DNA of 64,000 bases from Neoechinorhynchus agilis. Its lineage: Eukaryota > Animalia > Acanthocephala. The notes under the pieces were generated by a model. The model was not told the DNA's origin, did no database searches, and worked only from the letters and a program-made list of their open reading frames with translations. A program made the translations under genes and the position numbers. The stretch is from assembly GCA_051530055.1 (NCBI GenBank), contig CM121342.1, positions 6,926,864-6,990,863 of the forward strand, in the 5' to 3' direction. This document shows positions 2,230 to 28,628 of this stretch, piece after piece; the first letter of the stretch is position 1; each line of letters opens with the position of its first letter.

Positions 2230-4930
2230 ATGACATCCCGACGTTGCCAGTATACTGGCAGCATTCCCTCGCCTTGTCGCAATTACTGATTCATTGACCC
2301 GAGGAAATTTCTCGAGCGCGGTTCTCCCGTCAACCTTTTTCGTCCCAAATCGTTGGAGGAGATCGCTGATGGGCCCAAGGCTCCATACGTTTCCACGGCC
2401 AAAGGGGCAATGGTAATTCCTTTGGAGCTCTCTTCTTGAACGCTTTCGTTCCTGCAGCTACGACCGCGACCTGGATAACTTTTTTGAAATCGGAAAATTA
2501 CTGGGTCGCATCCCAAAAAAAGCGGTTTTCCCTCCGCCATGGAAAAACCGCACCGTCAGGTCGCTTGCTTTATAGGCGGCATAAATTACTCGGCTCTAGA
2601 ATATTGGACACGTGAACGGAATCTAGGGCTTTACTCAAAATTGGGAGTTCAATTTTAGTTTCTTGGAAACTTCCCTCTGACATTTTACAACAGAGGCCGT
2701 GTCTTAAATTAGCGTCAACTATAAAGCCGCAGCGATGCGGTACTGGATACATCCTGGCCCAATCTTAAAGAAACTGCGACCCTTAACGTAGAATCCTCTA
2801 GAAGGGAGATGTCTATAATAAGTGTAAAGAGTTTCGCGTGTTCGGGATTGAAACTCATAAGCGACACTCTTCCTGGGGATATAACACCCAATACTGAGGG
2901 TTAAAGGGTCTATGAATTCAAGGATGATTTAGGGAAGAGCCCAGATTGGGATTACTAAGTGAGAGGACGAATTTCGAGGTAATTTCTTGAGATGCGGTAG
3001 TACTTCGTATGACGAAACTAAGGGGAGTGCCGACGAGTTGACAAAAGTTTCATATTTGGGCTTTTAAGATTTTGTGGGGTGTGATGTGGATCAGGGACTA
3101 AGGGCAAATCAGACACTGCGCGGATACCGAGGCGGCCAAAAGAGGTTGGAAACGTAGCCAGCCGCCAGCCCGTATCCGTAATATTTATATTAAAAAGTTT
3201 CTTTAAAAAAGAACGTAAAACCCCGTCGAGATCCGATAAAACTCTTTTCTCCCCGAAACACGGAGCAGCGCTCAACTTATACATCAATTTCAGGATGTAT
3301 ATGCAATTCTTTAAAAGGAAGAAGGCTTCGTGCGCCGACAGCTCACATGCTCTTGTACATAATAATTCGAGCTTCGGTATGTGGGCCTCGAGGTCCTTTG
3401 AGACATTTTCGGCGAAAATGGGGCTTCCGAGGAGATAAATTTCGTATTTTGTAACCTCGCGCACCCTGGGAGCAACTTGCCGAAAATCTGGGATGATCGT
3501 CGAACGTGAACTGCCATCGAATCCCTGAAAAAGGATTTCGCATTTTTCGAAATTCAGTTTGAGGCCCAAGTTTTCTGCTTCGCTTATAATCGTTTGTAAG
3601 TCCCCTAAAAAATCCTGGGGATTACCGCCGAGTGTGGCGTCATCCAGGTACCAGCCGTTGAAATGAGAAATTAGTGATTGTACCAATTCATTGATTGTAC
3701 ACGCGAATCCAATTGGACCAAGGGGGTCACCCTGCTGAAATCCACATTGGCCAAATAATCTGATTTTTGTATAGAAGAGGGTTTTATTGGAGTAGGCCGA
3801 TAAAAAGTAGGGGTAGCTTTCAGGGATAAAATCTTTGATGGAATCCAACATTTTCTCTCTGAGGAAGGAGTTGAAGGCGTTTTTAAAATCTAACTTTAAG
3901 ACGACCAAAGGAGCCTTTGCTACTTCAAGATGGTCGCGGAGTACGTGAGTAATGGCTTCGGCACCACAAGATGTGCAGCATCCTAGCTGGAAAGGCCTCA
4001 ACACCCCCCCCCCAATTTCTGCGAAACTTTCTTACATATTATTTTAACTGCAAGTCTCCGAAGAGTGCAGCCGATGGCGATGGGACGAATCCCGCCATCT
4101 TTTTTCGAAAGCCCACAAAGAGAAGCCGAGAAGAAAAGCCGGATTACGAATTCGCTAAGAGAACCCCGGGATGAAAGGGTCAACCACTCTGACCAGTGGA
4201 GATTCCAGGAGTTTACCCGCAACACAGGTCGAGAAGGATAACATATCTTTTGGGTGTTGAGGACGCAAACCGTCAGGTCCGTGTCCTGAAGCGTTGGCTT
4301 AGGAGGAAATAGCTTTTTTAAATTCATTGAGGGAAGTTGGGTCCGGCGCTACTTGTGGAAAGTTAAATACCGTCGCTCCATTAAAATTGGGTTGCTTATT
4401 TTAAAGAGCCTGATACGTGGCTTCATGGTTGGGGGCGAAATCTTCGGTTGAGGCTAAAAGTCGAACAGCTCCGCGGATGTCTCCATCGGATAATTTTGCC
4501 GAAACTCGCTCAATTTTATATACGGCGGAAAAATTAAAAGAATTTATCGATTTCGATATTTCGGCATAATATTGTGTCTTTATCAAGATTTCTTGTTATT
4601 TCGAAACCAAATATTGCTACGAATTGAAAATCTGCTTGACTACGATCCGATATTATAGCGTCTTCTAGTCATCGCTAAAGAACTGTTGCCAAACCAGATT
4701 TTAAAGTTGGTCTACTTTCCCATTTGTTTAAATGCTTTTCAATAATTTGTTCTTACTCAAAAATCTTCGGGAAGTGGAATCTGTGCTTTGCCAACATGCA
4801 AAGATTGGCACTTCTGTTAGAATCATCTTATGAATTCCATGCGATTTGCTGCAAAATGGATCTCTCAATCTTTCCATTGGTTCATTTACCAGGAATCATC
4901 TATAAGAAATTTTCAAAATGAGTACGTTTT
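2230..4930 (-). mobile_element. Degraded CRE-clade non-LTR retrotransposon (RT + C-terminal restriction-like endonuclease)
   Basis: RT motifs KKDGGIRPIAIGCTLRRL, LKLDFKNAFNS, GFQQGDPLGP and WYLDDATLGG in ORFs 3998-4327 and 3018-4004. Downstream STLRVAVSLRLG, PWRRGKPLFWDAT and PLAVETYGALGPSA are typical of the RLE end. Multiple frameshifts. Confidence 0.88.
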
Positions 4931-8740: not shown

Positions 8741-9140
8741 TCCTTTATTTTAATTATTTAAAAATTCGATATGTTAAATATGTTAACTGCATGTTGAATA
8801 GATTGGAAAAACCTAAGATAAATCGTTTTATTGTATTTTTAGAGGGTAACGGAATTACTGAATTTTTAATCCAAAATTTTGCGCGATTTTTGTGTATAAG
8901 AAATTAACGGATTTATCGTCGGTCCAAAACCATACGGAGGCGTCCTCTACCAAGAACACACAACAAAATATCTTCTTTACTAACCAAAAACTTAAAATTT
9001 GGTTTACTAAAAGTCACTCAAGTGGTGAATGTGGAAGTTAAATTTGAACTTTTCTCAGCGCACCGGTGAAAAAAGTAATGTATTACTCATACATTCATCC
9101 TTCACGAGTTATCTCGATTTTTCGTCGTCGTTCATCCGCA

Positions 9141-11070
9141 ATGCTTCTTGTGCTTTTCTTAAATATTCTATTATTAATAATTCCACTAAGTCTTGTTTCA
9201 ATGGAACAGCATGGAAAAGAACCGAAATGCGAGATAACGCACTCGCATCCCATTTTAGCCTTTGGAATACGATGTTACGAAAATGATTCTGTTGGGAAAA
9301 TGGAATCGATTATTAATTTATTACGATCCGCTCAACGCAATCAAGAAAATTTTGTATTTAGTAATGTCGATCTTAAAGATATTCCGCAATATTTTGTTTT
9401 GTTATTTCCTCGAGTCGTAAAGGTAACTGTCCTTCATGAATACGAACAATCATACAGATCGTCAGTACTGAGCAATTCTTTACTTTATAAACTCAAACGT
9501 GTAAAAGAGTTAAATATAAAGAGAACTGGAATTGTCAAGATTGATGAAGACGCTTTTAAAGAATTTATGAGTCTTGTTCGACTAAGTTTGAGTTTCAACA
9601 GTATATCAGTAATTCCTGCCCAATTCCCACGGCAATTACCGTTATTGGAAATACTTCGTTTATCGAACAATATGCTAACAAGTGAAAGTATAAATGTTAT
9701 TTGCAGACTACGATACCTGAAACTATTGGATTTAAGTCATAATTTGATTGATCATTTAGGTTCGTCGCGCTCCGGCTATTTTTTACTATCTTGAGGAATT
9801 GTACATAGTTGGTAATCCAATTAAATCCGTAGACAAAATGGAATCGTTTAAAAATCTTCGTTATCTCCATATTACGTATCTCGAAAATGTCAACGATTTA
9901 TTTAGTCGTAAAGACCAATATTCCAAACTATATGAATTCATGGTCACAAATGGATCGGCTAAAGCGTTTGACACTAATTTGTTAGCTGCAGCGCCTCGAC
10001 TTGAAAATCTTGAGATTACGAGAAATCAATTAGAATCGATTCCAGCTGGAAATCAACAAACGAATGAAAATATAAAGAAATTTTCGTTGGCGTATAATCA
10101 AATAACATTCATCAACGAAAATGATTTCGATGACTATACAAGTCTTATAGAACTCCATCTTCCGCACAATAGGATTAATGGCTTCCATAGAAATGCATTT
10201 TCAAAGTTAACGAGATTGAGAGATATATTTCTTGATTATAATCAAATAAAGACGATCAGCTCGGGCAGTTTAAGGAATAATCGCCTACTGGAAATCTTCT
10301 CGATTAGTTACAACCAATTAAATCATATCCATTGCAATCTTTTTCGGAATACAGGAAAACTCCAATACGTCGATTTGTCTGAAAATCGAATTCGAGATTT
10401 GATTGCGAAAAATTCTCTAACTCATTCGATTGCATACGTCGCTTTACGAGGAAATAAAATATCATCAGTAACCTTTAGCCGAACAAAAAGTAACCGGACT
10501 CCCGCGAACTTCGGCCTTGATTCGGAGTTTGTCCCTCAATCAATTTTGATCGCGTTGAAGATCTATGGTAAAAACGCTACGAAGGTTTTCTCGCTAACAA
10601 ACAAAAACCTGACAACGTTCAGAGAAATAAACATGTTCGTTGCAGTCAATACTTTAATTTCACTCGACGTGACTAATAACCAAATAACTATGCTTGGACC
10701 AACCGATTTTTCGGGTTTATTCAATCTTAAATATTTTAGTCTTCAATCAAATATAATCACCAAAATAAAATCAAAAGCTTTTGAAGCTGTTAGCCTTTTG
10801 CAAGCTATCGATCTCAGTCAAAACAAACTCAGTACAATTCCAGTTGATGCGTTCGATGGATTGGGAAATCTTATATTTTTTAATCTGGCTGATAACAAAC
10901 TTAGAAGCATACCAGGAAGTCTTTATGATCTAAAAATGCCAAATCTCGTTTTCTTGAATGTTTCAAACAATCAAGTCGAATCCTTTAATATTGAACACTT
11001 CGCAATGATGAGATCACTGGGGCAGATAGTCGTCGAAGGAATGAAAATTGAAGCAACCTTTTATTACTGA
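9141..11070 (+). CDS. Intronless secreted leucine-rich-repeat protein, copy 1 (1-bp frameshift in T-run at 9779-9784)
   Basis: ATG at 9141 is followed by a hydrophobic signal peptide (MLLVLFLNILLLIIPLSLVS) and many LxxLxLxxNxI repeats, ending ATFYY* with no TM segment. Split into ORFs 9066-9794 and 9799-11070 by T6 versus T5 in copy 2. Confidence 0.85.
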
Positions 11071-16680: not shown

Positions 16681-17081
16681 CCTTTATTTTAATTATTTAA
16701 AAATTCAATATGTTAAATATGTTAACTGCATGTTGAATAGATTGGAAAAACCTAAGATAAATCGTTTTATTGTATTCTTAGAGGGTAACGGAATTACTGA
16801 ATTTTTAATCCAAAATTTTGCGCGATTTTTTGTGTATAAGAAATTAACGGATTTATCGTCGGTCCAAAACCATACGGAGGCGTCCTCTACCAAGAACACA
16901 CAACAAAATATCTTCTTTACTAACCAAAAACTTAAAATTTGGTTTACTAAAAGTCACTCAAGTGATGAATAGTGGAAGTTAAATTTGAATTTTTCTCAGC
17001 GCACCGGTGAAAAAAGTAATGTATTACTCATACATTCATCCTTCACGAGTTATCTCGATTTTTCGTCGTCGTTCAACCGCA

Positions 17082-19008
17082 ATGCTTCTTGTGCTTTTCT
17101 TAAATATTCTATTATTAATAATTCCACTAAGTCTTGTTTCAATGGAACAGCATGGAAAAGAACCGAAATGCGAGATAACGCACTCGCATCCTATTTTAGC
17201 CTTTGGAATACGATGCTACGAAAATGATGCTGTTGGGAAAATGGAATCGATTATTAATTTATTACGATCTGCTCAACGCAATCAAGAAAATTTTGTATTT
17301 AGTAATGTCGATCTTAAAGATATTGCGCAATATTTTGTTTTGTTATTTCCTCGAGTCGTAAAGGTAACTGTCCTTCATGAATACGAACAATCATACAGAT
17401 CGTCAGTACTGAGCAGTTCTTTACTTTATAAACTCAAACGTGTAAAAGAGTTAAATATAAAGAGAGCTGGAATTGTTAAGATTGATGAAGACGCTTTTAA
17501 AGAATTTAAGAGACTTGTTCGACTAAGTTTGAGTTTCAACAGCATATCCTTAATTCCGGCAAAATTCCCACTGCAATTACCGTTATTGAAGATACTCCGT
17601 TTATCAAACAATATGCTAACAAGTGAAAGTATAGATGTTATTTGCAGGCTACGATACCTGAAACTATTGGATTTAAGTTATAATTTGATAGATCATTTAG
17701 GTTCGTCGCGCTCCGGCTATTTTTACTATCTTGAGGAATTGTACATAGTTGGAAATCCAATTAAATCCGTATACAAAATGGAATCGTTTAAAAATCTTCG
17801 TTATCTCCATATTACGTATCTCGAAAATGTCAACGATTTATTGAGTTGTAAAGACCAATATTCCAAACTATATGAATTCATGGTCACAAATGGATCGGCT
17901 AAAGCGTTTGACACTAATTTGTTAGCTGCAGCGCCTCGACTTGAAAATCTTGAGATTACGAGAAATCAATTAGAATCGATTCCAGCTGGAAACCAACAAA
18001 CGAATGAAAATATAAAGAAATTTTCGTTGGCGTATAATCAAATAACATTCATCAACGAAAATGATTTCGATGACTATACAAGTCTTATAGAACTCCATCT
18101 TCCGCACAATAGGATTAATGGCTTCCATAGAAATGCATTTTCAAAGTTAACGAGATTGAGAGATATATTTCTTGATTATAATCAAATAAAGACGATCAGC
18201 TCGGGCAGTTTAAGGAATAATCGCCTACTGGAAATCTTCTCGATTAGTTACAACCAATTAAATCATGTCCATTGCAAATCACTGAAATACAGGAAACTTC
18301 CAATACGTCGATTTGTCTGGAAATCGAATTCGAGATTTGATTGCAAGAAATTCTCCAACACATTTGATTGCATACGTCGCTTTATGGTTAAATAAAATAT
18401 CCGCAGTAACCTTCAGCAGAACAAAAAGTTACAAGGCTCTCGCAAACTTCGGCCTTTATTCGGAATACGTCCCTCAGTCAATTTTGACCGCGTTGAAGAT
18501 CTATGGTCAAAACGCTACGAGGGTTATATCGCTAACAAACAAAAATCTGACAACCTTCAGAGAAATAGACATATGGCTAACGATCAATATTTTAATTTCA
18601 CTCGACTTGACTGATAACCAAATAACTATGCTTGGACCAACCGATTTTTCGGGTTTATTCAATCTTAAATATTTGAGTCTTCAATCAAATATAATCACCA
18701 AAATAAAATCAGAAGCTTTTGAAGCTGTTAGCCTTTTGCAAGCTATCGATCTCAGTCAAAACAAACTCAGTACAATTCCAGTTGATGCGTTCGATGGATT
18801 GGAAAATCTTATATTTTTTAATCTGGCTGATAACAAACTTAGAAGCATACCAGGAAGTCTTCATGATCTAAAAATGCCAAATCTTGTTTTCTTGAATGTT
18901 TCAAACAATCAAGTCCAATCCTTTAATATTGAACACTTCGCAATGATGAGATCACTGGGGCAGATAGTCGTCGAAGGACTGAAAATTGAAGCAATCTTTT
19001 ATTACTGA
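17082..19008 (+). CDS. Intronless secreted LRR protein, copy 2 (net 2-bp deletion at ~18276-18285)
   Basis: Paralog of 9141-11070; ORFs 17007-18395 and 18313-19008. cattgcaaatcactgaaatac here versus cattgcaatctttttcggaatac in copy 1. Confidence 0.85.
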
Positions 19009-20639: not shown

Positions 20640-21150
20640 ACAATAATTCCGAAAAGCATAAGGTTTCTAAATGGATGCCTGCAACCATATTAATGGACAT
20701 AGCGAATGCCAAACTAATCGGGAATTGCAGCCGTTTGATCTCACTCGTAATGAAAGGTATTGTAGGGTTGAACACATCCATGACTGTAGCACAACCTTTC
20801 ATAATCTTTGCTAAAAAAGCGAGTCCCATTACACAATTTTGGAGGATCAATATTGCGCAAAGGCATATTATATGCTCCAATTTTAAGACACAGATTCTAC
20901 GGAGGAAGTTTTGAGGTTCATGCGAATTCAGAAATTCTGTTGGAAAGAATACATTTTGTGCAGGATTTGTGAGAGTGTCGATAGATTTGTAATGTCTAGG
21001 AGGTGCCTGGAATCCACTGTCATTTTGGGGAGCCAAAAAGATCTTTGAAAGAGCCATTCATGTTGTGTATAATTGACATGAATTGTGGGGGAAAACGTGG
21101 TCTTGTAGCTCGTTAAAATTGGCAACAACACTGCAAAAGGATGTGTCAAA
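20640..21150 (-). mobile_element. Helitron RepHel (PIF1 helicase) C-terminal fragment
   Basis: Minus frames give YKSIDTLT...FPTEFLNSHEP, LKIGAYNMPLRNIDPPKLCNGTR and IKRLQFPISLAFAMSIN...GIHLETLCFS, the standard Helitron helicase C-terminal motifs, frameshifted. Confidence 0.88.
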
Positions 21151-21299
21151 TTAAATCAGGCCAACCTTCCCGTCTCCAAGCGTAAGATTGAACACTAAGA
21201 ATAACCTTTGTGACTTATTTAAATAAGTGAGATGATTTAAGACATGCATTCAGTAAGTCGTCAGCAGCTGTAGATTTTGGAATCACGATAAATGTCTAC

Positions 21300-21560
21300 C
21301 GGTAGTCACAAATCAAAGAATTATTAAAACGCAGATCTTGCGGTGTTTGACAAACATCTCCATTGTTTTCTTTCCATACACGGCCGAATGAACACCCGCG
21401 GTCCACCGATTTCGGTCTGGAAAGCAGCAGATCGGCCACGAGATTACACCGAAATCGAAATAGTCCTGGGGGAGTAGTGAATGGTACACCTCGTCGAATG
21501 CTTTCGACCAATCCAATTGATTTGGCGGCTGAAGTAAGAGGCAGTATTGTCGAGGTTGCG
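21300..21560 (-). mobile_element. LINE (CR1/L2-like) RT fragment
   Basis: LDWSKAFDEVYHSLL...FGV matches the LDFSKAFDxVxHxLL RT motif. Confidence 0.6.
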
Positions 21561-22007
21561 TAGGGGCGTGTCATAAATGCAAAATACGGCGCCGGTTGCA
21601 GAAAATTTAGCCGGAAGCCGCATTTGAGACTCGGTACATTCTCCTCGTATTAAAAAAAATAGTCGTAAAATGCACTTTTGATATTGTTTCATCTTTTGTT
21701 CCCTCGTTGTTTCGTAGACACCCACTTCTGTGTATTTACAAGAACAGAATCATAAACTGGAAATGAAAACAAGTTTGCGTTTAATTTCGTTTTATTCTCT
21801 AACCATACATCGTTAAAGTTTCCCTGAGTATTCATTGGGATTCTAAACGACAGAATAAACCTATTGGACACTTCATTGGTTTTAGTATTCATTGACGTTC
21901 ATTTCTATTTCCACAAACGATTTAAGTGATATTTTGGGCGTAAATATTTTTGAATTGATGTCTTGGATTATTATCTTCGGCGGGGAAAAGATACTTTCTT
22001 TTGATTT

Positions 22008-22161
22008 AAATTCACTAATTTATTTCCTCGATATTTCACCTCCTGGATAATTCCGACATTTTCTCAAGGTTTCGTAAAGATTTGCGAAATAATGATAAAC
22101 CTTGTTAAAATGTCGGAATTTTCCGAGAGGTCAAATATCGACGAAATAAATTAGTGAATTT
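22008..22161. mobile_element. Foldback/MITE-like inverted repeat
   Basis: attcactaatttatttcctcgatatttcacctcctggataattccgacatttt is the reverse complement, with a few mismatches, of aaaatgtcggaattttccgagaggtcaaatatcgacgaaataaattagtgaat; caaggttt/aaaccttg extends the stem inward. Confidence 0.8.
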
Positions 22162-22259
22162 TTGAATCTGGGGGGTGGCAAAATTATCAAAAAAGAAAGC
22201 CTTTTTGTGCATTGCTTGTCCATTTTCCGACTATGGGAAACGCGTTCTCCGTTTTTGGA

Positions 22260-23380
22260 TTAAAAAATCTCCTTTTTTATTGTCTTGGTGACCGTTTTAA
22301 GTGCTGTTTTGAACATTTTGGACACTTCATTGACGTTCATCTCGATTTTCCACAAACGATTCAAGTCTTTTTCAGATCTCCTTTTCTTCGCTTGGTGACG
22401 GTTTTAAGTGCTATTTTGAACATTTTGGACACTTCATTGACGTTCATCTTTATTTTCCACAAACGATTCAAGTCTTTTCAGATCTCCTTTTTTTATTGTC
22501 TTGGTGACGGTTTTAAGTGCTATTTTGAACATTTTGGACACTTCATTGACGTTCATCTCGATTTTCCACAAACGATTCAAGTCTTTTTCAGATCTCCTTT
22601 TTTTCGCTTGGTGACGGTTTTAAGTGCTATTTTGAACACTTTGGACACTTCATTGACGTTCATCTCGATTTTCCACAAACGATTCAAGTCTTTTTCAGAT
22701 CTCCTTTTTTTATTGTCTTGGTGACGGTTTTAAGTGCTATTTTGAACACTTTGGACACTTCATTGACGTTCATCTCGATTTTCCACAAACGATTCAAGTC
22801 TTTTTCAGATCTCCTTTTCTTCGCTTGGTGACGGTTTTAAGTGCTATTTTGAACACTTTGGACACTTCATTGACGTTCATCTCCATTTTCCACAAACGAT
22901 TCAAGTCTTTCAGATCTCCTTTTCTTCGCTTGGTGACGGTTTTAAGTGCTGTTTTGAACATTTTGGACACTTCATTGACGTTCATCTCGATTTTCCACAA
23001 ACGATTCAAGTCTTTTTCAGATCTCCTTTTCTTCGCTTGGTGACGGTTTTAAGTGCTATTTTGAACATTTTGGACACTTCATTGACGTTCATCTCGATTT
23101 TCCACAAACGATTCAAGTCTTTTTCAGATCTCCTTTTCTTCGCTTGGTGACGGTTTTAAGTGCTATTTTGAACATTTTGGACACTTCATTGACGTTCATC
23201 TCGATTTTCCACAAACGATTCAAGTCTTTTTCAGATCTCCTTTTTTTATTCACTTGGTTACGGTTTTAAGTGTTATTTTGAACATTTTGGACACTTCATT
23301 GGCGTTCATCTCCATTTTCCGCAAACGATTCAAGTCTTTTCAGATCTCCTTTTTTTTCTTGGCTTGGTGAGTGTTTTTAT
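22260..23380. repeat. Tandem array, ~107-bp monomer (105-110), ~10.5 copies
   Basis: cttggtgacggttttaagtgc recurs at 22284, 22391, 22500, 22607, 22717, 22824, 22929, 23036, 23143, 23253 and 23363. Confidence 0.97.
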
Positions 23381-23541
23381 TGTTATTTTGGAGAACGCAA
23401 ATGATTTTCTATTCTCGAATGACCGCAAGACGCTTGCGTGCTCGCATAAATCCGTGTGAGACGTGTCATTATTTTTCTTGAGATGGCGTAGCTGGGCCAT
23501 AAATAGATTTTCCCATTTGGCGTCTGTGTGTGCGTGCGCTC

Positions 23542-23549
23542 TATAAAAG
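23542..23549 (+). promoter_or_regulatory. Candidate TATA box of the D-LDH gene
   Basis: TATAAAAG 48 nt upstream of the ATG, preceded by a GC/GT-rich tract (gtgtgtgcgtgcgctc). Confidence 0.5.
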
Positions 23550-23589
23550 CCTTCGTTTCTCTCGCTCCCGCATCCATTTTTCAGGCGAT

Positions 23590-24618
23590 ATGGCACCTTT
23601 TAAGCTGTTGATGTTCGACTCGAAGCAGTACGACGAAGATTACTTCAATTTAAAGTTGAAAGCCTTGAATCTGGACCAAAAGATTGAAATCACTTATAAA
23701 AGTGTTCGCCTTAATGAAGAAGAGGCTCAAAAAGTGTCTGGATTCGACGGTGTTTGTCTTTTTGTGAACGATGTTTGCGACGAAGCTACAGTCAGCGCAT
23801 TGGCCTCAAATAAGGTTAAACTTTTGGTTCTAAGATGTGCTGGATTCAACAATGTTGCCGTCAAACACGCTAATTCTCTGGGTCTAAAGGTTGTCCGTGT
23901 ACCGGCCTACAGTCCATTCGCAGTAGCAGAACATTCAGTCGCTCTCTTATTGACCCTCAATCGACACCTTCACACTGCATACAACCGCGTCCGGAACTCT
24001 AATTTCTCCCTGGATAACCTTGTTGGATTCGATCTTCATGGTAAAACTGTTGGCGTCGTCGGTACTGGTAAAATCGGCAAGTGTGCCATTGCCATCTTTA
24101 AAGGATTCGGTTGCCATGTTCTCGCTTTCGATATCTACGAAGATAAAGAAACTGCTTCCAAACTTCAATACGAATACACCAGTCTTGATCGTCTGTTAAA
24201 AGAAAGTGATGTGATCAGCCTGTATGCTCCTTTGACTAAAGAAAATTATCATATGATCAATTCGGAATCAATCAATAAAATGAAACATGGAGTCTACATT
24301 GTCAATACCGGTCGTGGTCCACTCATTGACGCAAATGCACTATTGGAAGGATTGAAAAATGGAAAAGTCGGTGGAGCTTGTTTAGATGTTTACGAAAATG
24401 AATCAGGAGTATTTTATAATGACATGTCTTCTAAAGTTCTCCAAGATGATGTATTAGCGAGATTTATCAATATGCCCAATGTTATCATCACTTCGCATCA
24501 GGCTTATTTGACCTCGGATGCTTTGGATGCCATCTCTTGTTGCAGTCTTTGCAATATTAAAGAATTCTTGGAGGAAAAGACGCTTACTAATGTTGTCACT
24601 GATGAAATGGTCATTTAG
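23590..24618 (+). CDS. ldhA: NAD-dependent D-lactate dehydrogenase, LdhA-type D-2-hydroxyacid dehydrogenase (342 aa, intronless)
   Basis: Motifs LRCAGFNNV, RVPAYSPFAVAEH, GFDLHGKTVGVVGTGKIG (Rossmann), NTGRG (Arg), LDVYENE (Glu) and ITSHQAYLT (His). Most plausible start is ATG at 23590. Confidence 0.93.
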   Translation: MAPFKLLMFDSKQYDEDYFNLKLKALNLDQKIEITYKSVRLNEEEAQKVSGFDGVCLFVNDVCDEATVSALASNKVKLLVLRCAGFNNVAVKHANSLGLKVVRVPAYSPFAVAEHSVALLLTLNRHLHTAYNRVRNSNFSLDNLVGFDLHGKTVGVVGTGKIGKCAIAIFKGFGCHVLAFDIYEDKETASKLQYEYTSLDRLLKESDVISLYAPLTKENYHMINSESINKMKHGVYIVNTGRGPLIDANALLEGLKNGKVGGACLDVYENESGVFYNDMSSKVLQDDVLARFINMPNVIITSHQAYLTSDALDAISCCSLCNIKEFLEEKTLTNVVTDEMVI

Positions 24619-24876
24619 AAGTTTGGTAAGTGCTTTTTCGCGAAATAAACAACAACATTTTATTCCGTTCTCAAAAATATCCATGAGTGAAGGTGAAATT
24701 GTTTTTAGAAAATTCTCAATAAAACTGATTGGCGCTTTTTTTACAATAAAAATATCATCGAATTTTGGAATTTAAACAGAATTTTAGATTCTAACGTCAT
24801 TTTTTAAGATGTGCTAAGCAACCTTTTCAATTTGAAGCAGAAAAAACTGCCACCAACTAGAATAAAGTGCACAAAA

Positions 24877-27800
24877 ATCAAAGGTTAATTCAGAACAAAA
24901 GAACCGAAATTTATACCACACTGCACCTTACAACATTGGGACTTGTTCGTTTAATCTGACCTCAGCCTCGATTTTATCCGCTTATTACCCCGGAATCGAC
25001 CTTATTTCTATTGGGGAAATTTTGTTCCGATTACACTCAAATCAAAGGTTAATTCAGAACAAAAGAACAGAAATTTACACCACTCTGCACCTTACAACAT
25101 TGAGACTTGTTCGTTTAATCTGACCTCAGCCTCGATTTTATCCGCTTATTACCCCGGAATCGACCTTATTTCTATTGGGGAAGTTTTGTTCCGATTACAC
25201 TCAAATCAAAGGTTAATTCAGAACAAAAGAACAGAATTTACACCACTCTGCACCTTACAACATTGAGACTTGTTCGTTTAATCTGACCTCAGCCTCGATG
25301 TTATCCGCTTATTACCCCGGAATCGACCTTATTTCTATTGGGGAAGTTTTGTTCCGATTACACTCAAATCAAAGGTTAATTCAGAACAAAAGAACAGAAA
25401 TATACACCACTCTGCACCTTACAACATTGAGACTTGTTCGTTTAATCTGGCCTCAGCCTCGATTTTATCCGCTTATTACCCCGGAATCGACCTTATTTCT
25501 ATTGGGGAAGTTTTGTTCCGATTACACTCAAATCAAAGGTTAATTCAGAACAAAAGAACAGAAATTTACACCACTCTGCACCTTACAACATTGAGACTTG
25601 TTCGTTTAATCTGACCTCAGCCTCGATTTTATCCGCTTATTACCCCGGAATCGACCTTATTTCTATTGGGGAAGTTTTGTTCCGATTACACTCAAATCAA
25701 AGGTTAATTCAGAACAAAAGAACAGAAATATACACCACTCTGCACCTTACAACATTGAGACTTGTTCGTTTAATCTGACCTCAGCCTCGATGTTATCCGC
25801 TTATTACCCCGGAATCGACCTTATTTCTATTGGGGAAATTTTGTTCCGATTACACTCAAATCAAAGGTTAATTCAGAACAAAAGAACAGAAATATACACC
25901 ACTCTGCACCTTACAACATTGAGACTTGTTCGTTTAATCTGACCTCAGCCTCGATGTTATCCGCTTATTACCCCGGAATCGACCTTATTTCTATTGGGGA
26001 AGTTTTGTTCCGATTACACTCAAATCAAAGGTTAATTCAGAACAAAAGAACAGAAATTTACACCACTCTGCACCTTACAACATTGAGACTTGTTCGTTTA
26101 ATCTGACCTCAGCCTCGATGTTATCCGCTTATTACCCCGGAATCGACCTTATTTCTATTGGGGAAATTTTGTTCCGATTACACTCAAATCAAAGGTTAAT
26201 TCAGAACAAAAGAACAGAAATTTACACCACTCTGCACCTTACAACATTGAGACTTGTTCGTTTAATCTGGCCTCAGCCTCGATTTTATCCGCTTATTACC
26301 CCGGAATCGACCTTATTTCTATTGGGGAAGTTTTGTTCCGATTACACTCAAATCAAAGGTTAATTCAGAACAAAAGAACAGAAATTTACACCACTCTGCA
26401 CCTTACAACATTGAGACTTGTTCGTTTAATCTGACCTCAGCCTCGATTTTATCCGCTTATTACCCCGGAATCGACCTTATTTCTATTGGGGAAGTTTTGT
26501 TCCGATTACACTCAAATCAAAGGTTAATTCAGAACAAAAGAACAGAAATATACACCACTCTGCACCTTACAACATTGAGACTTGTTCGTTTAATCTGACC
26601 TCAGCCTCGATGTTATCCGCTTATTACCCCGGAATCGACCTTATTTCTATTGGGGAAATTTTGTTCCGATTACACTCAAATCAAAGGTTAATTCAGAACA
26701 AAAGAACAGAAATATACACCACTCTGCACCTTACAACATTGAGACTTGTTCGTTTAATCTGGCCTCAGCCTCGATGTTATCCGCTTATTACCCCGGAATC
26801 GACCTTATTTCTGTTGGGGAAGTTTTGTTCCGATTACACTCAAATCAAAGGTTAATTCAGAACAAAAATATACACCACTCTGCACCTTACAACATTGAGA
26901 CTTGTTCGTTTAATCTGACCTCAGCCTCGATGTTATCCGCTTATTACCCCGGAATCGACCTTATTTCTATTGGGGAAGTTTTGTTCCGATTACACTCAAA
27001 TCAAAGGTTAATTCAGAACAAAAGAACAGAAATATACACCACTCTGCACCTTACAACATTGAGACTTGTTCGTTTAATCTGGCCTCAGCCTCGATTTTAT
27101 CCGCTTATTACCCCGGAATCGACCTTATTTCTATTGGGGAAATTTTGTTCCGATTACACTCAAATCAAAGGTTAATTCAGAACAAAAGAACCGAAATTTA
27201 CACCACTCTGCACCTTACAACATTGAGACTTGTTCGTTTAATCTGACCTCAGCCTCGATGTTATCCGCTTATTACCCCGGAATCGACCTTATTTCTATTG
27301 GGGAAGTTTTGTTCCGATTACACTCAAATCAAAGGTTAATTCAGAACAAAAGAACAGAAATATACACCACTCTGCACCTTACAACATTGAGACTTGTTCG
27401 TTTAATCTGGCCTCAGCCTCGATTTTATCCGCTTATTACCCCGGAATCGACCTTATTTCTATTGGGGAAATTTTGTTCCGATTACACTCAAATCAAAGGT
27501 TAATTCAGAACAAAAGAACAGAAATTTACACCACTCCGCACCTTACAACATTGAGACTTGTTCGTTTAATCTGGCCTCAGCCTCGATTTTATCCGCTTAT
27601 TACCCCGGAATCGACCTTATTTCTATTGGGGAAGTTTTGTTCCGATTACACTCAAATCAAAGGTTAATTCAGAACAAAAGAACAGAAATTTACACTATTC
27701 CGCACCTTACAACATTGAGACTTGTTCGTTTAATCTGACCTCAGCCTCGATGTTATCCGCTATTACCCCGGAATCGACCTTATTTCTATTGGGGAAGTTT

Positions 27801-28447
27801 TGTTCCGATTACACTCAAATCAAAGGTTAATTCAGAACAAAAGAACAGAAATATACACCACTCTGCACCTTACAACATTGAGACTTGTTCGTTTAATCTG
27901 GCCTCAGCCTCGATTTTATCCGCTTATTACCCCGGAATCGACCTTATTTCTGTTGAGGAAGTTTTGTTCCGATTACACTCAAATCAAAGGTTAATTCAGA
28001 ACAAAAGAACCGAAATTTACACCACTCCGCACCTTACAACATTGAGACTTGTTCGTTTAATCTGACCTCAGTCTCGATGTTATCCGCTTATTACCCCGGA
28101 ATCGAGCTTATTTCTGTTGAGGAAGTTTTGTTCCGATTACACTCAAATCAAAGGTTAATTCAGAACAAAAGAACAGAAACATACACCACTCTGCATCTTA
28201 CAACATTGAGACTTGTTCGTTTAATCTGGCCTCAGCCTCGATTTTATCCGCTTATTACCCCGGAATCGAGCTTATTTCTATTGGGGAAATTTTGTTCCGA
28301 TTACTCTCAAATCAAAGGTTAATTCAGAACAAAACCGACATTTGCACAACTCCGCACCTTACAACATTGAGACTTGTTCGTTTAATCTGGCCTCAGTCTC
28401 GATGTTACCCGCTTATTACCCCGGAATCGACCTTATTTCTATTGGGA
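24877..28447. repeat. Tandem array, 164-bp monomer, ~22 copies
   Basis: aatcaaaggttaattcagaac recurs at 25040, 25204 and onward. Monomers are highly homogeneous, with an 8-bp deletion near 26865 and degraded terminal units. Confidence 0.98.
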
Positions 28448-28628
28448 ATTTTGGGTAATTTTATACTTTTAAAATTCATCTTCTTAAAATTAGTAATTCT
28501 ATGACTGACTACAATGCATTTTGTCTGCGTACAATATGGGTTCGTTTTGTTTTTTCTGTAATTGGTTTATTCTCAAAAGGTTTATTGATTTACAATATAT
28601 ATGTTCAATGAACAATGTTTGAATGGTG

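Follow-up and report, generated by a model that had tools for sequence, protein, structure and literature searches.

The 64,000-nucleotide stretch of Neoechinorhynchus agilis DNA analyzed here (the window) carries, at 23590..24618 on the + strand, an unbroken coding sequence for a D-lactate dehydrogenase (D-LDH) of 342 amino acids plus stop, hereafter DLDH1, which was delineated from the list of open reading frames and from Pfam and PDB searches. Its start codon is the first ATG in an open frame running from 23530. The protein matched the Pfam domains 2-Hacid_dh_C (PF02826, 7.6e-55, residues 117-305) and 2-Hacid_dh (PF00389, 3.6e-24, residues 13-336), and its top solved structure was the D-LDH 5z21 (2.4e-101, residues 3-337). 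Structure matches to D-LDHs ranged from 1e-93 to 1e-101, whereas glyoxylate reductase, PHGDH, and CtBP matched at 1e-42 or worse. The motifs PAYSPFAVAEH, DVYENE, and TSHQA start at residues 105, 266, and 301, respectively. The domain, structure, and motif data agree with the complete LdhA-type reading frame with all catalytic motifs described in the initial annotation of this DNA.

The GxGxxG motif of DLDH1 reads GTGKIG (residues 158-163), and the catalytic Arg-Glu-His corresponds to R242, E271, and H303, which are invariant in an 11-sequence alignment of the clade described below and are the same residues in 5z21. D181, the conserved Asp of the betaB-alphaD loop, which specifies NADH preference in LDHD enzymes (PMC6303947), is also invariant across this alignment. 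The pyruvate-favoring LDHD pocket is formed by Phe in beta3-alpha3, Tyr in beta5-alphaA, and Tyr/Phe in betaG-alpha5 (PMC6303947); F58 (in FVND), Y107 (in PAYSP), and Y306 (in TSHQAY), whose structural equivalence was read from the alignment, are kept in the clade. The bacterial LDHD enzymes of E. coli (LdhA, 3wx0/5z1z), Fusobacterium nucleatum (5z21), and Pseudomonas aeruginosa (5z20) match DLDH1 in length and in the two-domain architecture of 2-hydroxyacid dehydrogenases, align with it over their full length within the range given above, and share with it the Arg-Glu-His, the GxGxxG, the NADH-specifying Asp, and the pyruvate-restricting Phe/Tyr (PMC6303947). DLDH1 scored below the curated cut-offs of NCBIfam PRK08605, PRK12480, and vanH_gen (212/356, 181/579, and 250/540 bits, respectively); since these models describe particular bacterial groups, DLDH1 was not filed under them. 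As judged from domains, motifs, and structure matches, DLDH1 is an LdhA/LDHD-type NAD-dependent D-lactate dehydrogenase, as first proposed, and the literature lists this subfamily only for bacteria and lower eukaryotes, with no metazoan (PMC6303947). We infer its enzyme activity, D-stereochemistry, and subcellular location from these features: DLDH1 is predicted to be a cytosolic NADH-dependent enzyme that would convert pyruvate to D-lactate and regenerate NAD+ for glycolysis.

Several sequence patterns resembling gene signals lie close to the coding region. The putative TATA-box-like motif TATAAAAG (23542..23549, +) is 48 nt 5' of the ATG, and the 3' splice-acceptor-like ttttcag (23578..23584, +) is 5 nt 5' of it; both had been reported upstream of the ATG and were located there. 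A polyadenylation-signal-like AATAAA (24644..24649, +) follows 26 nt 3' of the stop codon. In the deposited gene model (P0001, 371 aa), which belongs to a set produced by BRAKER with mRNA-seq hints (PMC12690905), ttttcag is the acceptor joined to an upstream exon. Six-frame mapping of the P0001 N-terminus placed this putative exon at 20675..20757 (+), where 28 codons plus one base are followed by GT (the donor reads aaag/gtattg); the putative intron (20758..23584, +; GT..AG, 2827 nt) contains a 107-bp tandem array. The 28-codon extension is missing in the 75%- and 63%-identical orthologues (P0002 and P0003), which start with MAPFK/MANSFK, corresponding to the ATG at 23590. Since the putative upstream exon is not conserved in these orthologues, it may belong to the 5' UTR or be an artefact of annotation. 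Accordingly, the initial view of DLDH1 as a gene without introns holds for the conserved coding region, which is unbroken, but not for the deposited model, which adds the exon across the 2827-nt intron.

YnAG sites like ttttcag also occur directly 5' of the ATG in a second N. agilis paralogue (DLDH2, below) and in DLDH1 of the acanthocephalan Pomphorhynchus laevis. Spliced-leader trans-splicing was considered as a possible reason for the ttttcag before the DLDH1 ATG. A rotifer-like leader pattern resembling the 5' end of contig L002 showed no genome-wide enrichment (7 matches vs 31 for the reversed control), and the two best leader-pattern loci in the genome were unlike SL RNA genes.

Two tandem arrays without assigned strand were identified by TRF on either side of DLDH1, an upstream array at 22267..23390 (107-bp unit, ~10 copies, 94% matches) and a downstream array at 24875..28453 (164-bp unit, ~22 copies, 96% matches). 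DNA searches of the worm's own genome found copies of the 107-bp array only at C2:6949130-6950205 and of the 164-bp array only at C2:6951738-6955316; both are satellites confined to this site rather than repeats scattered through the host genome. The arrays are present on both sides as originally noted, but their designation as host arrays is no proof of host origin. Because they are confined to the DLDH1 locus, they are uninformative on host origin by themselves, and we dropped them as markers of it.

The location of DLDH1 in the worm chromosome was assessed from its surroundings and composition. DLDH1 sits on a 16.4-Mb scaffold of an assembly built from ONT, HiFi, and Hi-C data with 96% k-mer completeness (PMC12690905), and the 64-kb window contains no N runs or assembly gap. 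It is flanked by LRR_8, Ig C2-set, kinesin DUF3694, and EF-hand genes. Of the neighboring genes said to be spliced, the kinesin gene supports the claim, as its DUF3694 domain is divided over two open reading frames. The GC3 of DLDH1 is 0.39, compared with 0.31-0.40 in neighboring exons, and its relative synonymous codon usage correlates with that of host exons (+0.54), whereas that of a planctomycete homologue does not (-0.24), in agreement with the host-like codons noted at the outset. A contaminant or assembly artefact, with a piece of bacterial DNA wrongly joined into the worm scaffold, is suggested only by the bacterial-like family and the intronless coding region, and nothing positive speaks for it. 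It conflicts with the gap-free sequence between animal genes, with the host-like GC and codon usage and the TATA-like and AATAAA-like motifs of DLDH1, with the orthologues of a second acanthocephalan that was assembled independently, and with a paralogue on the same chromosome 6.3 Mb away. We therefore regard contamination as effectively refuted, its probability being negligible. The gap-free window, the animal-gene flanks, and the host-like GC3 and codons bear out the assignment of DLDH1 to an animal chromosome: it is a resident, long-domesticated worm gene, physically integrated among host genes.

Orthologues and paralogues place DLDH1 in a wider family. The P. laevis DLDH1 orthologue is 63% identical and intronless and lies on a 329-kb contig. 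A second paralogue, DLDH2, which has an N-terminal presequence (first ~35 residues) and is probably mitochondrial, is present in both N. agilis and P. laevis; N. agilis DLDH2, within C2:683,000-685,000, is the same-chromosome copy mentioned above. Bdelloid rotifer copies have two short introns and adjoin fn3/DSCAM-like and EF-hand genes. No intron position is common to the bdelloid, P. laevis, and N. agilis copies. P0002, P0004, P0014, P0065, and P0121 were assigned to acanthocephalans or bdelloids by tree position only, and the DLDH2 exons were compared separately, not as a joined spliced model. The P. laevis orthologue, the shared paralogues, and the bdelloid copies together show that the gene is not an innovation of one parasitic lineage. 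As for the initial idea of D-lactate fermentation serving hypoxic or parasitic life, a tie to parasitism was not sustained, as the same family is vertically inherited in Syndermata, including free-living bdelloids, and both acanthocephalans have two paralogues. The DLDH family is old within Syndermata and is neither a recent nor a parasite-specific capture. A duplication in the acanthocephalan stem would have given rise to a cytosolic DLDH1 and a presequence-bearing DLDH2.

In all trees built, the acanthocephalan and bdelloid sequences formed one exclusive clade. The most careful tree (IQ-TREE, LG+C20 PMSF, 100 rows) supported Syndermata at 97/97, Acanthocephala at 98/91, Bdelloidea at 100/100, and DLDH1 and DLDH2 at 100/96 each, and the exclusive syndermatan clade was also recovered by FastTree with 369 rows (support 98). 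Its SH-aLRT support was sensitive to model and sampling, falling to 70 in a quick C20 tree and to 9 in a fast LG tree. These two values speak for a rival reading in which bdelloids and acanthocephalans each acquired the gene independently from related donors and the joint clade is a long-branch artefact. Bdelloids are notorious for foreign genes, and their stem is long (0.71 in the careful IQ-TREE tree). In addition, DLDH1 is no closer to bdelloid proteins (48-52% identity) than to bacterial ones (48-55%), and acanthocephalan-bdelloid identity overall (48-54%) equals identity to bacteria. Nevertheless, the joint clade is exclusive throughout, is strongly supported under the best model and search and with the 369-row sampling, and has a topology that mirrors the species tree, separating Bdelloidea from Acanthocephala and, in both paralogues, Eoacanthocephala from Palaeacanthocephala. 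We consider two acquisitions unlikely and favor a single origin of the syndermatan family.

To collect homologues outside Syndermata, 1.84 billion representatives were scanned exhaustively with HMMER, and word-indexed searches were run as well. The next-best scorers after the syndermatan sequences were bacterial, among those named or placed by context, and the closest sequences outside the clade came from bacteria of many phyla (47-55% identity among named or context-checked matches; 47-54% for the best 80 prokaryotic species-representatives). No non-syndermatan animal was present among the best 120-150 matches listed, a result that rests on databases with uneven coverage. Identity of DLDH1 was 46% to ichthyosporeans and 43-46% to dinoflagellate-like sequences. 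The top HMMER representatives (604-694 bits) were rejected as closer relatives, since they are multi-domain dinoflagellate proteins with summed scores; per domain, dinoflagellate copies scored 250-390 bits, compared with 470-490 for bacteria. The expectation that the nearest relatives outside rotifers and acanthocephalans are bacterial is supported by these searches and identities, and the phylogeny proposed as a check yielded an exclusive syndermatan clade, with no broadly distributed metazoan clade among the matches listed.

The sister group of the syndermatan clade was a polytomy in the careful IQ-TREE tree. Its neighbor shifted with sampling among planctomycete-like sequences, a PVC/cNMP-fusion group, and dinoflagellate-like sequences, so that no donor lineage was identifiable in these trees. 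A protist donor, such as an alveolate or dinoflagellate-like prey organism or symbiont, would explain the dinoflagellate-like neighbor seen both in the quick C20 tree that included named bacteria (SH-aLRT 94) and in the fast LG tree (69), and an AU test did not reject a joint clade with protists (p = 0.13). Conversely, the protist group was separate in the careful 100-row tree, in which other sequences break its branch, and both the per-domain scores and the identity of just 43-48% place dinoflagellate copies farther away than bacteria. Since the syndermatan and dinoflagellate-like groups both have long branches, attraction between them is likely, and we judge a protist donor very unlikely.

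We also considered vertical inheritance, in which an LdhA-type D-LDH of early eukaryotes or opisthokonts was kept in scattered lineages (Ichthyosporea, chytrids, algae, dinoflagellates, and Syndermata) and lost in nearly all other animals. LdhA-type proteins do occur in the holozoans Amoebidium, Sphaeroforma, and Creolimax, as well as in a chytrid, a haptophyte, a green alga, and dinoflagellates, and extreme gene loss is known in acanthocephalans (PMC12256650), so patchy retention is not absurd. In AU tests, all run with --fast searches under LG+F+G4, sparser holozoan sampling gave no rejection of common clades with protists (p = 0.13) or with Amoebidium plus the chytrid (p = 0.28), nor of a clade of all eukaryotes (p = 0.07). 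With three ichthyosporeans, by contrast, the Holozoa (p = 0.037) and Opisthokonta (p = 0.030) constraints were rejected (delta lnL 87-92), although a rejection of the clade with Ichthyosporea at p = 0.03-0.04 is marginal. Other observations also disagree with vertical descent: the best 120 matches of an ichthyosporean query included no syndermatan or other animal protein and were filled by bacteria, syndermatan proteins are closer to bacteria than to any protist group, intron positions are not shared and several copies are intronless, and many independent losses across Metazoa would be needed. Vertical inheritance therefore seems improbable to us, while retaining some weight.

From the non-animal nearest relatives, we infer a foreign origin of the DLDH family. 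This part of the initial proposal of a foreign bacterial gene is probable, whereas a bacterial donor went undemonstrated, given the polytomy, the dinoflagellate-like neighbors, and the marginal rejection of vertical descent. An ancestral gene would have entered the rotifer lineage, intronless, from a non-animal, bacterial-like donor, and host composition, promoter, and poly(A) signals would have been gained later, as would introns in some lineages. The whole account, that of an old foreign-type D-LDH that became a duplicated syndermatan family and displaced the animal L-lactate dehydrogenase (L-LDH), appears to us reasonably likely.

Rotifers and acanthocephalans are well known to carry foreign genes, and one further case is therefore unsurprising in itself. 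Non-metazoan-flagged proteins amount to 4.8% in P. laevis and 6.4% in Rotaria magnacalcarata (PMC7310846), and these concern the same animal group and the same type of evidence as DLDH. That study found a single D-LDH transcript as the only sign of lactic fermentation in P. laevis and is silent on the origin of the D-LDH, the two paralogues, the sharing with bdelloids, and the missing L-LDH (PMC7310846). Compared with the bacterial LDHD enzymes, DLDH1 differs in residing in an animal chromosome, in its host codons and eukaryotic-looking promoter and poly(A) motifs, and in belonging to a Syndermata-only clade with a sister paralogue that has an N-terminal presequence. The chloroplast D-LDH of Chlamydomonas reinhardtii (4zgs), described as the sole eukaryotic LDHD that had been investigated by 2018 (PMC6303947), is fermentative, belongs to the same subfamily, and has an organelle-targeting extension, as acanthocephalan DLDH2 seems to have. 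However, it is farther from DLDH1 (1.8e-75 vs 1e-101 for bacterial enzymes) and comes from a plant-lineage alga in another clade. Anaerobic Neocallimastigomycota gut fungi are reported to have a D-LDH obtained via horizontal transfer (bioRxiv 10.1101/487215; PMC10978972); they resemble the worm as eukaryotes of an oxygen-poor gut that use a bacterial-type D-LDH interpreted as acquired, but they belong to another recipient kingdom and represent an independent event, and the trees built here do not include the fungal sequences.

The FAD-dependent mitochondrial animal D-LDH (LDHD/DLD1 type, EC 1.1.2.4), the enzyme of Cristescu et al. 2008 (PMC2570690), also uses D-lactate and occurs widely among animals but belongs to an unrelated family of FAD-binding oxidases. 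Because that paper treats the unrelated FAD type, it says nothing on DLDH1, and placement of DLDH1 in its vertically inherited invertebrate D-LDH clade was dropped. Whole-genome searches of N. agilis with TIGR01771 and Ldh_1_C, performed exon by exon with bacterial-weighted models on one assembly, revealed no L-LDH. The only loci found were those of malate dehydrogenases (MDHs), namely cytosolic MDH (TIGR01758, 210 bits, one exon) and mitochondrial MDH (TIGR01772). NAD-dependent D-LDH activity is classical in molluscs and chelicerates. Since no L-LDH was detectable in the N. agilis genome, DLDH1 is probably the worm's lactate-forming step and would have displaced the canonical animal L-LDH in this role. 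A tentative extension, in which we place somewhat less than even confidence, is that in acanthocephalans, and perhaps in all hemirotiferans, a foreign D-LDH replaced L-LDH, glycolysis ends in D-lactate, and one copy is mitochondrial.

These findings would put DLDH1 at the terminal step of glycolysis in a worm that leans heavily on fermentation in the host gut and in whose genome the usual animal enzyme for the lactate step is undetectable. If the displacement is true, a core end-step of animal glycolysis has been taken over completely by a non-orthologous enzyme, and the worms are predicted to excrete D-lactate rather than L-lactate. Elaboration of the old DLDH family into cytosolic and presequence-bearing copies would mean that a captured gene was built into a compartmentalized metabolism. 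The displacement would also provide an enzyme target without a counterpart in the vertebrate host. To our knowledge, vertebrate hosts have no LdhA-type NAD-dependent D-LDH, which makes DLDH1 a rational candidate target against acanthocephalan aquaculture pests.

Finally, N. agilis DLDH2 contains an insert for which the sole junction restoring consensus length is AA..AG (L005 1835-2086). The ends of this insert pair at -12.5 kcal/mol, a value that ~4% of shuffled or random controls also reach, and the fold of the entire insert is unremarkable (z = 0). A GT-AG alternative (L005 1841-2086) would add two residues.

The DLDH1 reading frame runs uninterrupted through 342 codons of the window's forward strand (23590–24618), and every LdhA-type motif quoted in the initial annotation was found in its place: PAYSPFAVAEH at residue 105, DVYENE at 266, and TSHQA at 301. 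The catalytic triad R242/E271/H303 is present, as are GTGKIG at 158, D181, and F58. The top solved structure for the product was the D-LDH 5z21 (2.4e-101, full-length alignment); other fermentative D-LDH structures (3wx0, 5z1z, and 5z20) also aligned full-length at 1e-93 to 1e-96, versus 1e-42 or worse for glyoxylate reductase, PHGDH, and CtBP. The NCBIfam D-LDH and VanH models matched, yet under their curated cut-offs, and their names were not applied to DLDH1 because these models were made for particular bacterial groups. The conserved pocket residues Phe58, Tyr107, and Tyr306 argue for pyruvate as the predicted substrate (PMC6303947).

In a word-indexed protein search, the DLDH1 product corresponded to ACOME3_006269, a Neoechinorhynchus agilis protein whose contig measures 16.4 Mb. 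Two putative signals reported earlier, the TATA-box-like motif TATAAAAG (48 nt 5′ of the ATG) and the acceptor-like ttttcag (23578–23584, 5 nt 5′ of the ATG), are indeed present on the + strand, and AATAAA lies 26 nt 3′ of the stop codon on the same strand. The deposited model has 371 aa, with 28 extra N-terminal codons from an exon at 20675–20757; its GT..AG intron of 2827 nt encloses a 107-bp-unit array and ends at the ttttcag acceptor. This extension is not conserved, since both P0002, the nearest protein, and the Pomphorhynchus laevis orthologue start at the position equivalent to ATG 23590, and it may be an artefact or a 5′-UTR exon mistaken for coding sequence. No contig on record encodes the exact 342-aa product. 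All three acanthocephalan D-LDH genes inspected carry a pyrimidine-tract–AG acceptor-like site 1–7 nt 5′ of the start codon (window 23578–23584 for DLDH1; 1387–1399 of the N. agilis DLDH2 stretch L005; 9985–9993 of the P. laevis stretch L001). Such sites could reflect 5′-UTR introns or spliced-leader trans-splicing; a rotifer-like spliced-leader pattern was not enriched in the N. agilis genome (7 matches versus 31 for the control).

The N. agilis assembly comprises 46.2 Mb in 102 contigs, and the window occupies G000:C2:6926864–6990863. It matches the published assembly, which combined ONT, HiFi, and Illumina reads with Hi-C and reached a k-mer completeness of 96% (PMC12690905). The 64-kb window contains no N characters. 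Upstream of DLDH1 lie an LRR_8-rich tandem gene pair on the + strand, each member split into two long ORFs (9066–11070 and 17007–19008), and a probable retroelement fragment, a reverse-transcriptase ORF on the − strand (3018–4004; RVT_1, 2.5e-14). On its 3′ side, DLDH1 is followed by an Ig C2-set exon, a kinesin gene, and an EF-hand exon. The kinesin gene must be spliced because its DUF3694 domain is divided between two ORFs, bearing out for this gene the earlier description of spliced host neighbors. Codon usage also proved host-like, as had been proposed: DLDH1 has a GC of 0.40 and a GC3 of 0.39, within the range of neighboring exons (GC3 0.31–0.40), and its RSCU correlation with them was +0.54 versus −0.24 for a planctomycete homologue. 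With a gap-free window, animal-gene flanks, and host-like GC3 and RSCU, contamination is excluded for practical purposes. Satellite-like tandem arrays flank DLDH1 on both sides (107-bp unit, 22267–23390; 164-bp unit, 24875–28453), with different units and 94–96% matches. Their presence was noted correctly in the initial annotation, but they occur only at this locus in the assembly and are therefore uninformative on the origin of the gene. The upstream array contains long open frames on both strands, which are probably meaningless.

Among the nearest proteins, P0002 (a UniParc entry) is 75% identical to DLDH1, and the P. laevis orthologue P0003, intronless and on a 329-kb contig, is 63% identical. 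P0004 (58%) comes from a Logan contig, L002, which ends in a Nextera adapter left untrimmed in the public assembly (CTGTCTCTTATACACATCT, 1284–1302). N. agilis itself carries a second copy, DLDH2, on the same chromosome, 6.3 Mb away and matching in two pieces (L005 1402–2769 = G000:C2:683401–684768, + strand). Its first exon opens with 34 residues (5 basic, 0 acidic, 10 Ser/Thr) that look like a mitochondrial presequence. DLDH2, with a P. laevis gene and the transcript-like P0014 as orthologues, is probably a mitochondrial NAD-dependent D-LDH; if so, this would be unusual for an animal. The DLDH2 frame is broken within the invariant PAYSPYAVAE motif. In the genome sequence, an AA..AG insert of 252 nt (L005 1835–2086) gives the sole junction preserving consensus length, and its ends pair at −12.5 kcal/mol, a value reached by ~4% of controls; an alternative GT-AG junction (L005 1841–2086) would add two residues. 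The P. laevis DLDH2 paralogue (P0123/GJ496_003586) was deposited at 492 aa as a mis-fusion, in which an unrelated exon of 125 aa, located 17 kb upstream, was joined to the D-LDH (L011 5001–23323, WNNJ02003330.1). The actual catalytic part is one open block at about L011 22295–23323 with an acceptor ahead of it, and the separate presequence exon lies near L011 17767–17877, ~4.3 kb upstream.

Bdelloid proteins (Adineta ricciae, Rotaria) are 49–52% identical to DLDH1, and acanthocephalan proteins are, by raw identity, no closer to bdelloid ones (48–54%) than to bacterial ones. The syndermatan sequences formed one exclusive clade in all seven trees. Its support was 94 in a quick PMSF tree (121 rows), 98 in a FastTree with all 21 syndermatan rows (369 rows), and 92 in a fast LG tree (69 rows); branch support was not computed for the fast LG trees of thinned sets (55–58 rows). 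With 80 named bacteria (110 rows), support was 9 under fast LG and 70 under quick PMSF, and this variation with model and sampling is a weakness. The careful IQ-TREE (LG+C20 PMSF, 100 rows) gave 97/97 for the syndermatan clade, 98/91 for Acanthocephala, 100/100 for Bdelloidea, and 100/96 for each of DLDH1 and DLDH2, of which the bootstrap values are rough because the ultrafast bootstrap was short of convergence at search end (correlation 0.945). The D-LDH topology matches the species tree for Bdelloidea versus Acanthocephala, consistent with Hemirotifera, a concept cited in PMC12256650. Since, in addition, the DLDH1 and DLDH2 groups each hold N. agilis and P. laevis, their duplication is older than the Eo-/Palaeacanthocephala split. 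DLDH1 is a member of an old syndermatan family, bdelloids included, that has been passed on vertically, and a parasite-specific capture was not borne out.

Bdelloid D-LDH genes take up ~1150 bp to encode 346 codons, with a pair of short introns (~55 bp) that follow residues ~210 and ~280. These genes neighbor fn3/DSCAM-like and EF-hand genes. The two tandem A. ricciae genes (L013 4163–5256 and 6001–7150, CAJNOR010004039.1; bdelloid subgroups A and B) arose independently of the DLDH1/DLDH2 duplication. No intron position is common to the bdelloid, P. laevis, and N. agilis copies, which fits an intronless ancestral gene with introns gained independently.

Outside the syndermatan clade, profile-search scores dropped from at least 526 bits to at most 491, for unnamed or bacterial sequences. 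An exhaustive HMMER scan covered 1.84 billion representatives, and dinoflagellate proteins headed its ranking; they were rejected as closest relatives, as their scores were summed over multiple domains (250–390 bits per domain versus 470–490 for bacterial proteins); P0205–P0208 (a Breviolum cluster, Scrippsiella, and MMETSP transcripts) have 2–3 tandem LdhA-type domains in 628–952 aa. Protein-atlas neighbors of the DLDH1 product were bacterial clusters throughout, and P0106, a near neighbor, has a planctomycete-like operon context. The best 80 species-representative prokaryotic genomes (47–54% identity) include Verrucomicrobiota, Clostridia, Planctomycetota, Bdellovibrionota, Bacteroidota, and Cyanobacteria. 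Many bacterial D-LDHs are ~490 aa with an N-terminal cyclic-nucleotide-binding domain, PF00027 (P0129, P0148, P0211–P0217, P0450, and others), one being named from a Lentisphaeria MAG; P0379, an abundant cluster of 310 members, is annotated as an HPr–D-LDH fusion in Eubacterium.

No non-syndermatan animal with an LdhA-type D-LDH was among the matches listed in any search, and LDHD has been recorded from bacteria and lower eukaryotes only (PMC6303947). Three members of Ichthyosporea (Amoebidium, Sphaeroforma, and Creolimax) do have LdhA-type proteins, as do a chytrid, a haptophyte, and a green alga, and vertical descent with massive loss is a live minority explanation for the syndermatan genes. 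AU tests (LG+F+G4, fast searches) gave p-AU values of 0.13 for one clade with protists, 0.28 with Amoebidium plus a chytrid, 0.07 for all eukaryotes together, and, with three ichthyosporeans, 0.037 for Holozoa and 0.030 for Opisthokonta. An ichthyosporean query returned neither animal nor syndermatan proteins among its best 120 matches. The sister of the syndermatan clade was a polytomy in the careful IQ-TREE and shifted with sampling among planctomycete-like, PVC/cNMP-fusion, and dinoflagellate-like groups. Taken together, the sequence comparisons make a non-animal origin of the family likely, although well short of certain. Of the horizontal transfer first proposed, what stands is a bacterial-type D-LDH that is integrated in the host genome and likely foreign in ancestry, but the trees single out no donor lineage and the family is an old syndermatan one.

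Across the whole N. agilis assembly, the L-LDH model TIGR01771 had one match, which at 34.9 bits fell short of the 303.6-bit cut-off. Ldh_1_C matched four places on contig C1: two loci examined in detail score as cytosolic MDH (TIGR01758, 210 bits, one exon) and mitochondrial MDH (TIGR01772), and the two weakest matches (25–32 bits) fall at about 10.18 and 10.42 Mb, in the vicinity of the mitochondrial MDH locus. L-LDH was thus not detectable with TIGR01771 and Ldh_1_C, two of the four Ldh_1_C places having been examined. This agrees with the P. laevis study, where a D-LDH transcript was the sole pointer to lactic fermentation (PMC7310846); fermentative metabolism has been described for acanthocephalans (PMC12690905, PMC7310846). 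Since no L-LDH is detectable, we infer that DLDH1 acts as a cytosolic pyruvate reductase, which would regenerate NAD+ in acanthocephalan fermentation, and that acanthocephalans should produce D-lactate. Foreign metabolic genes are already known in Syndermata; the twist here is the apparent displacement of L-LDH by D-LDH, alongside a putatively compartmentalized paralogue pair.
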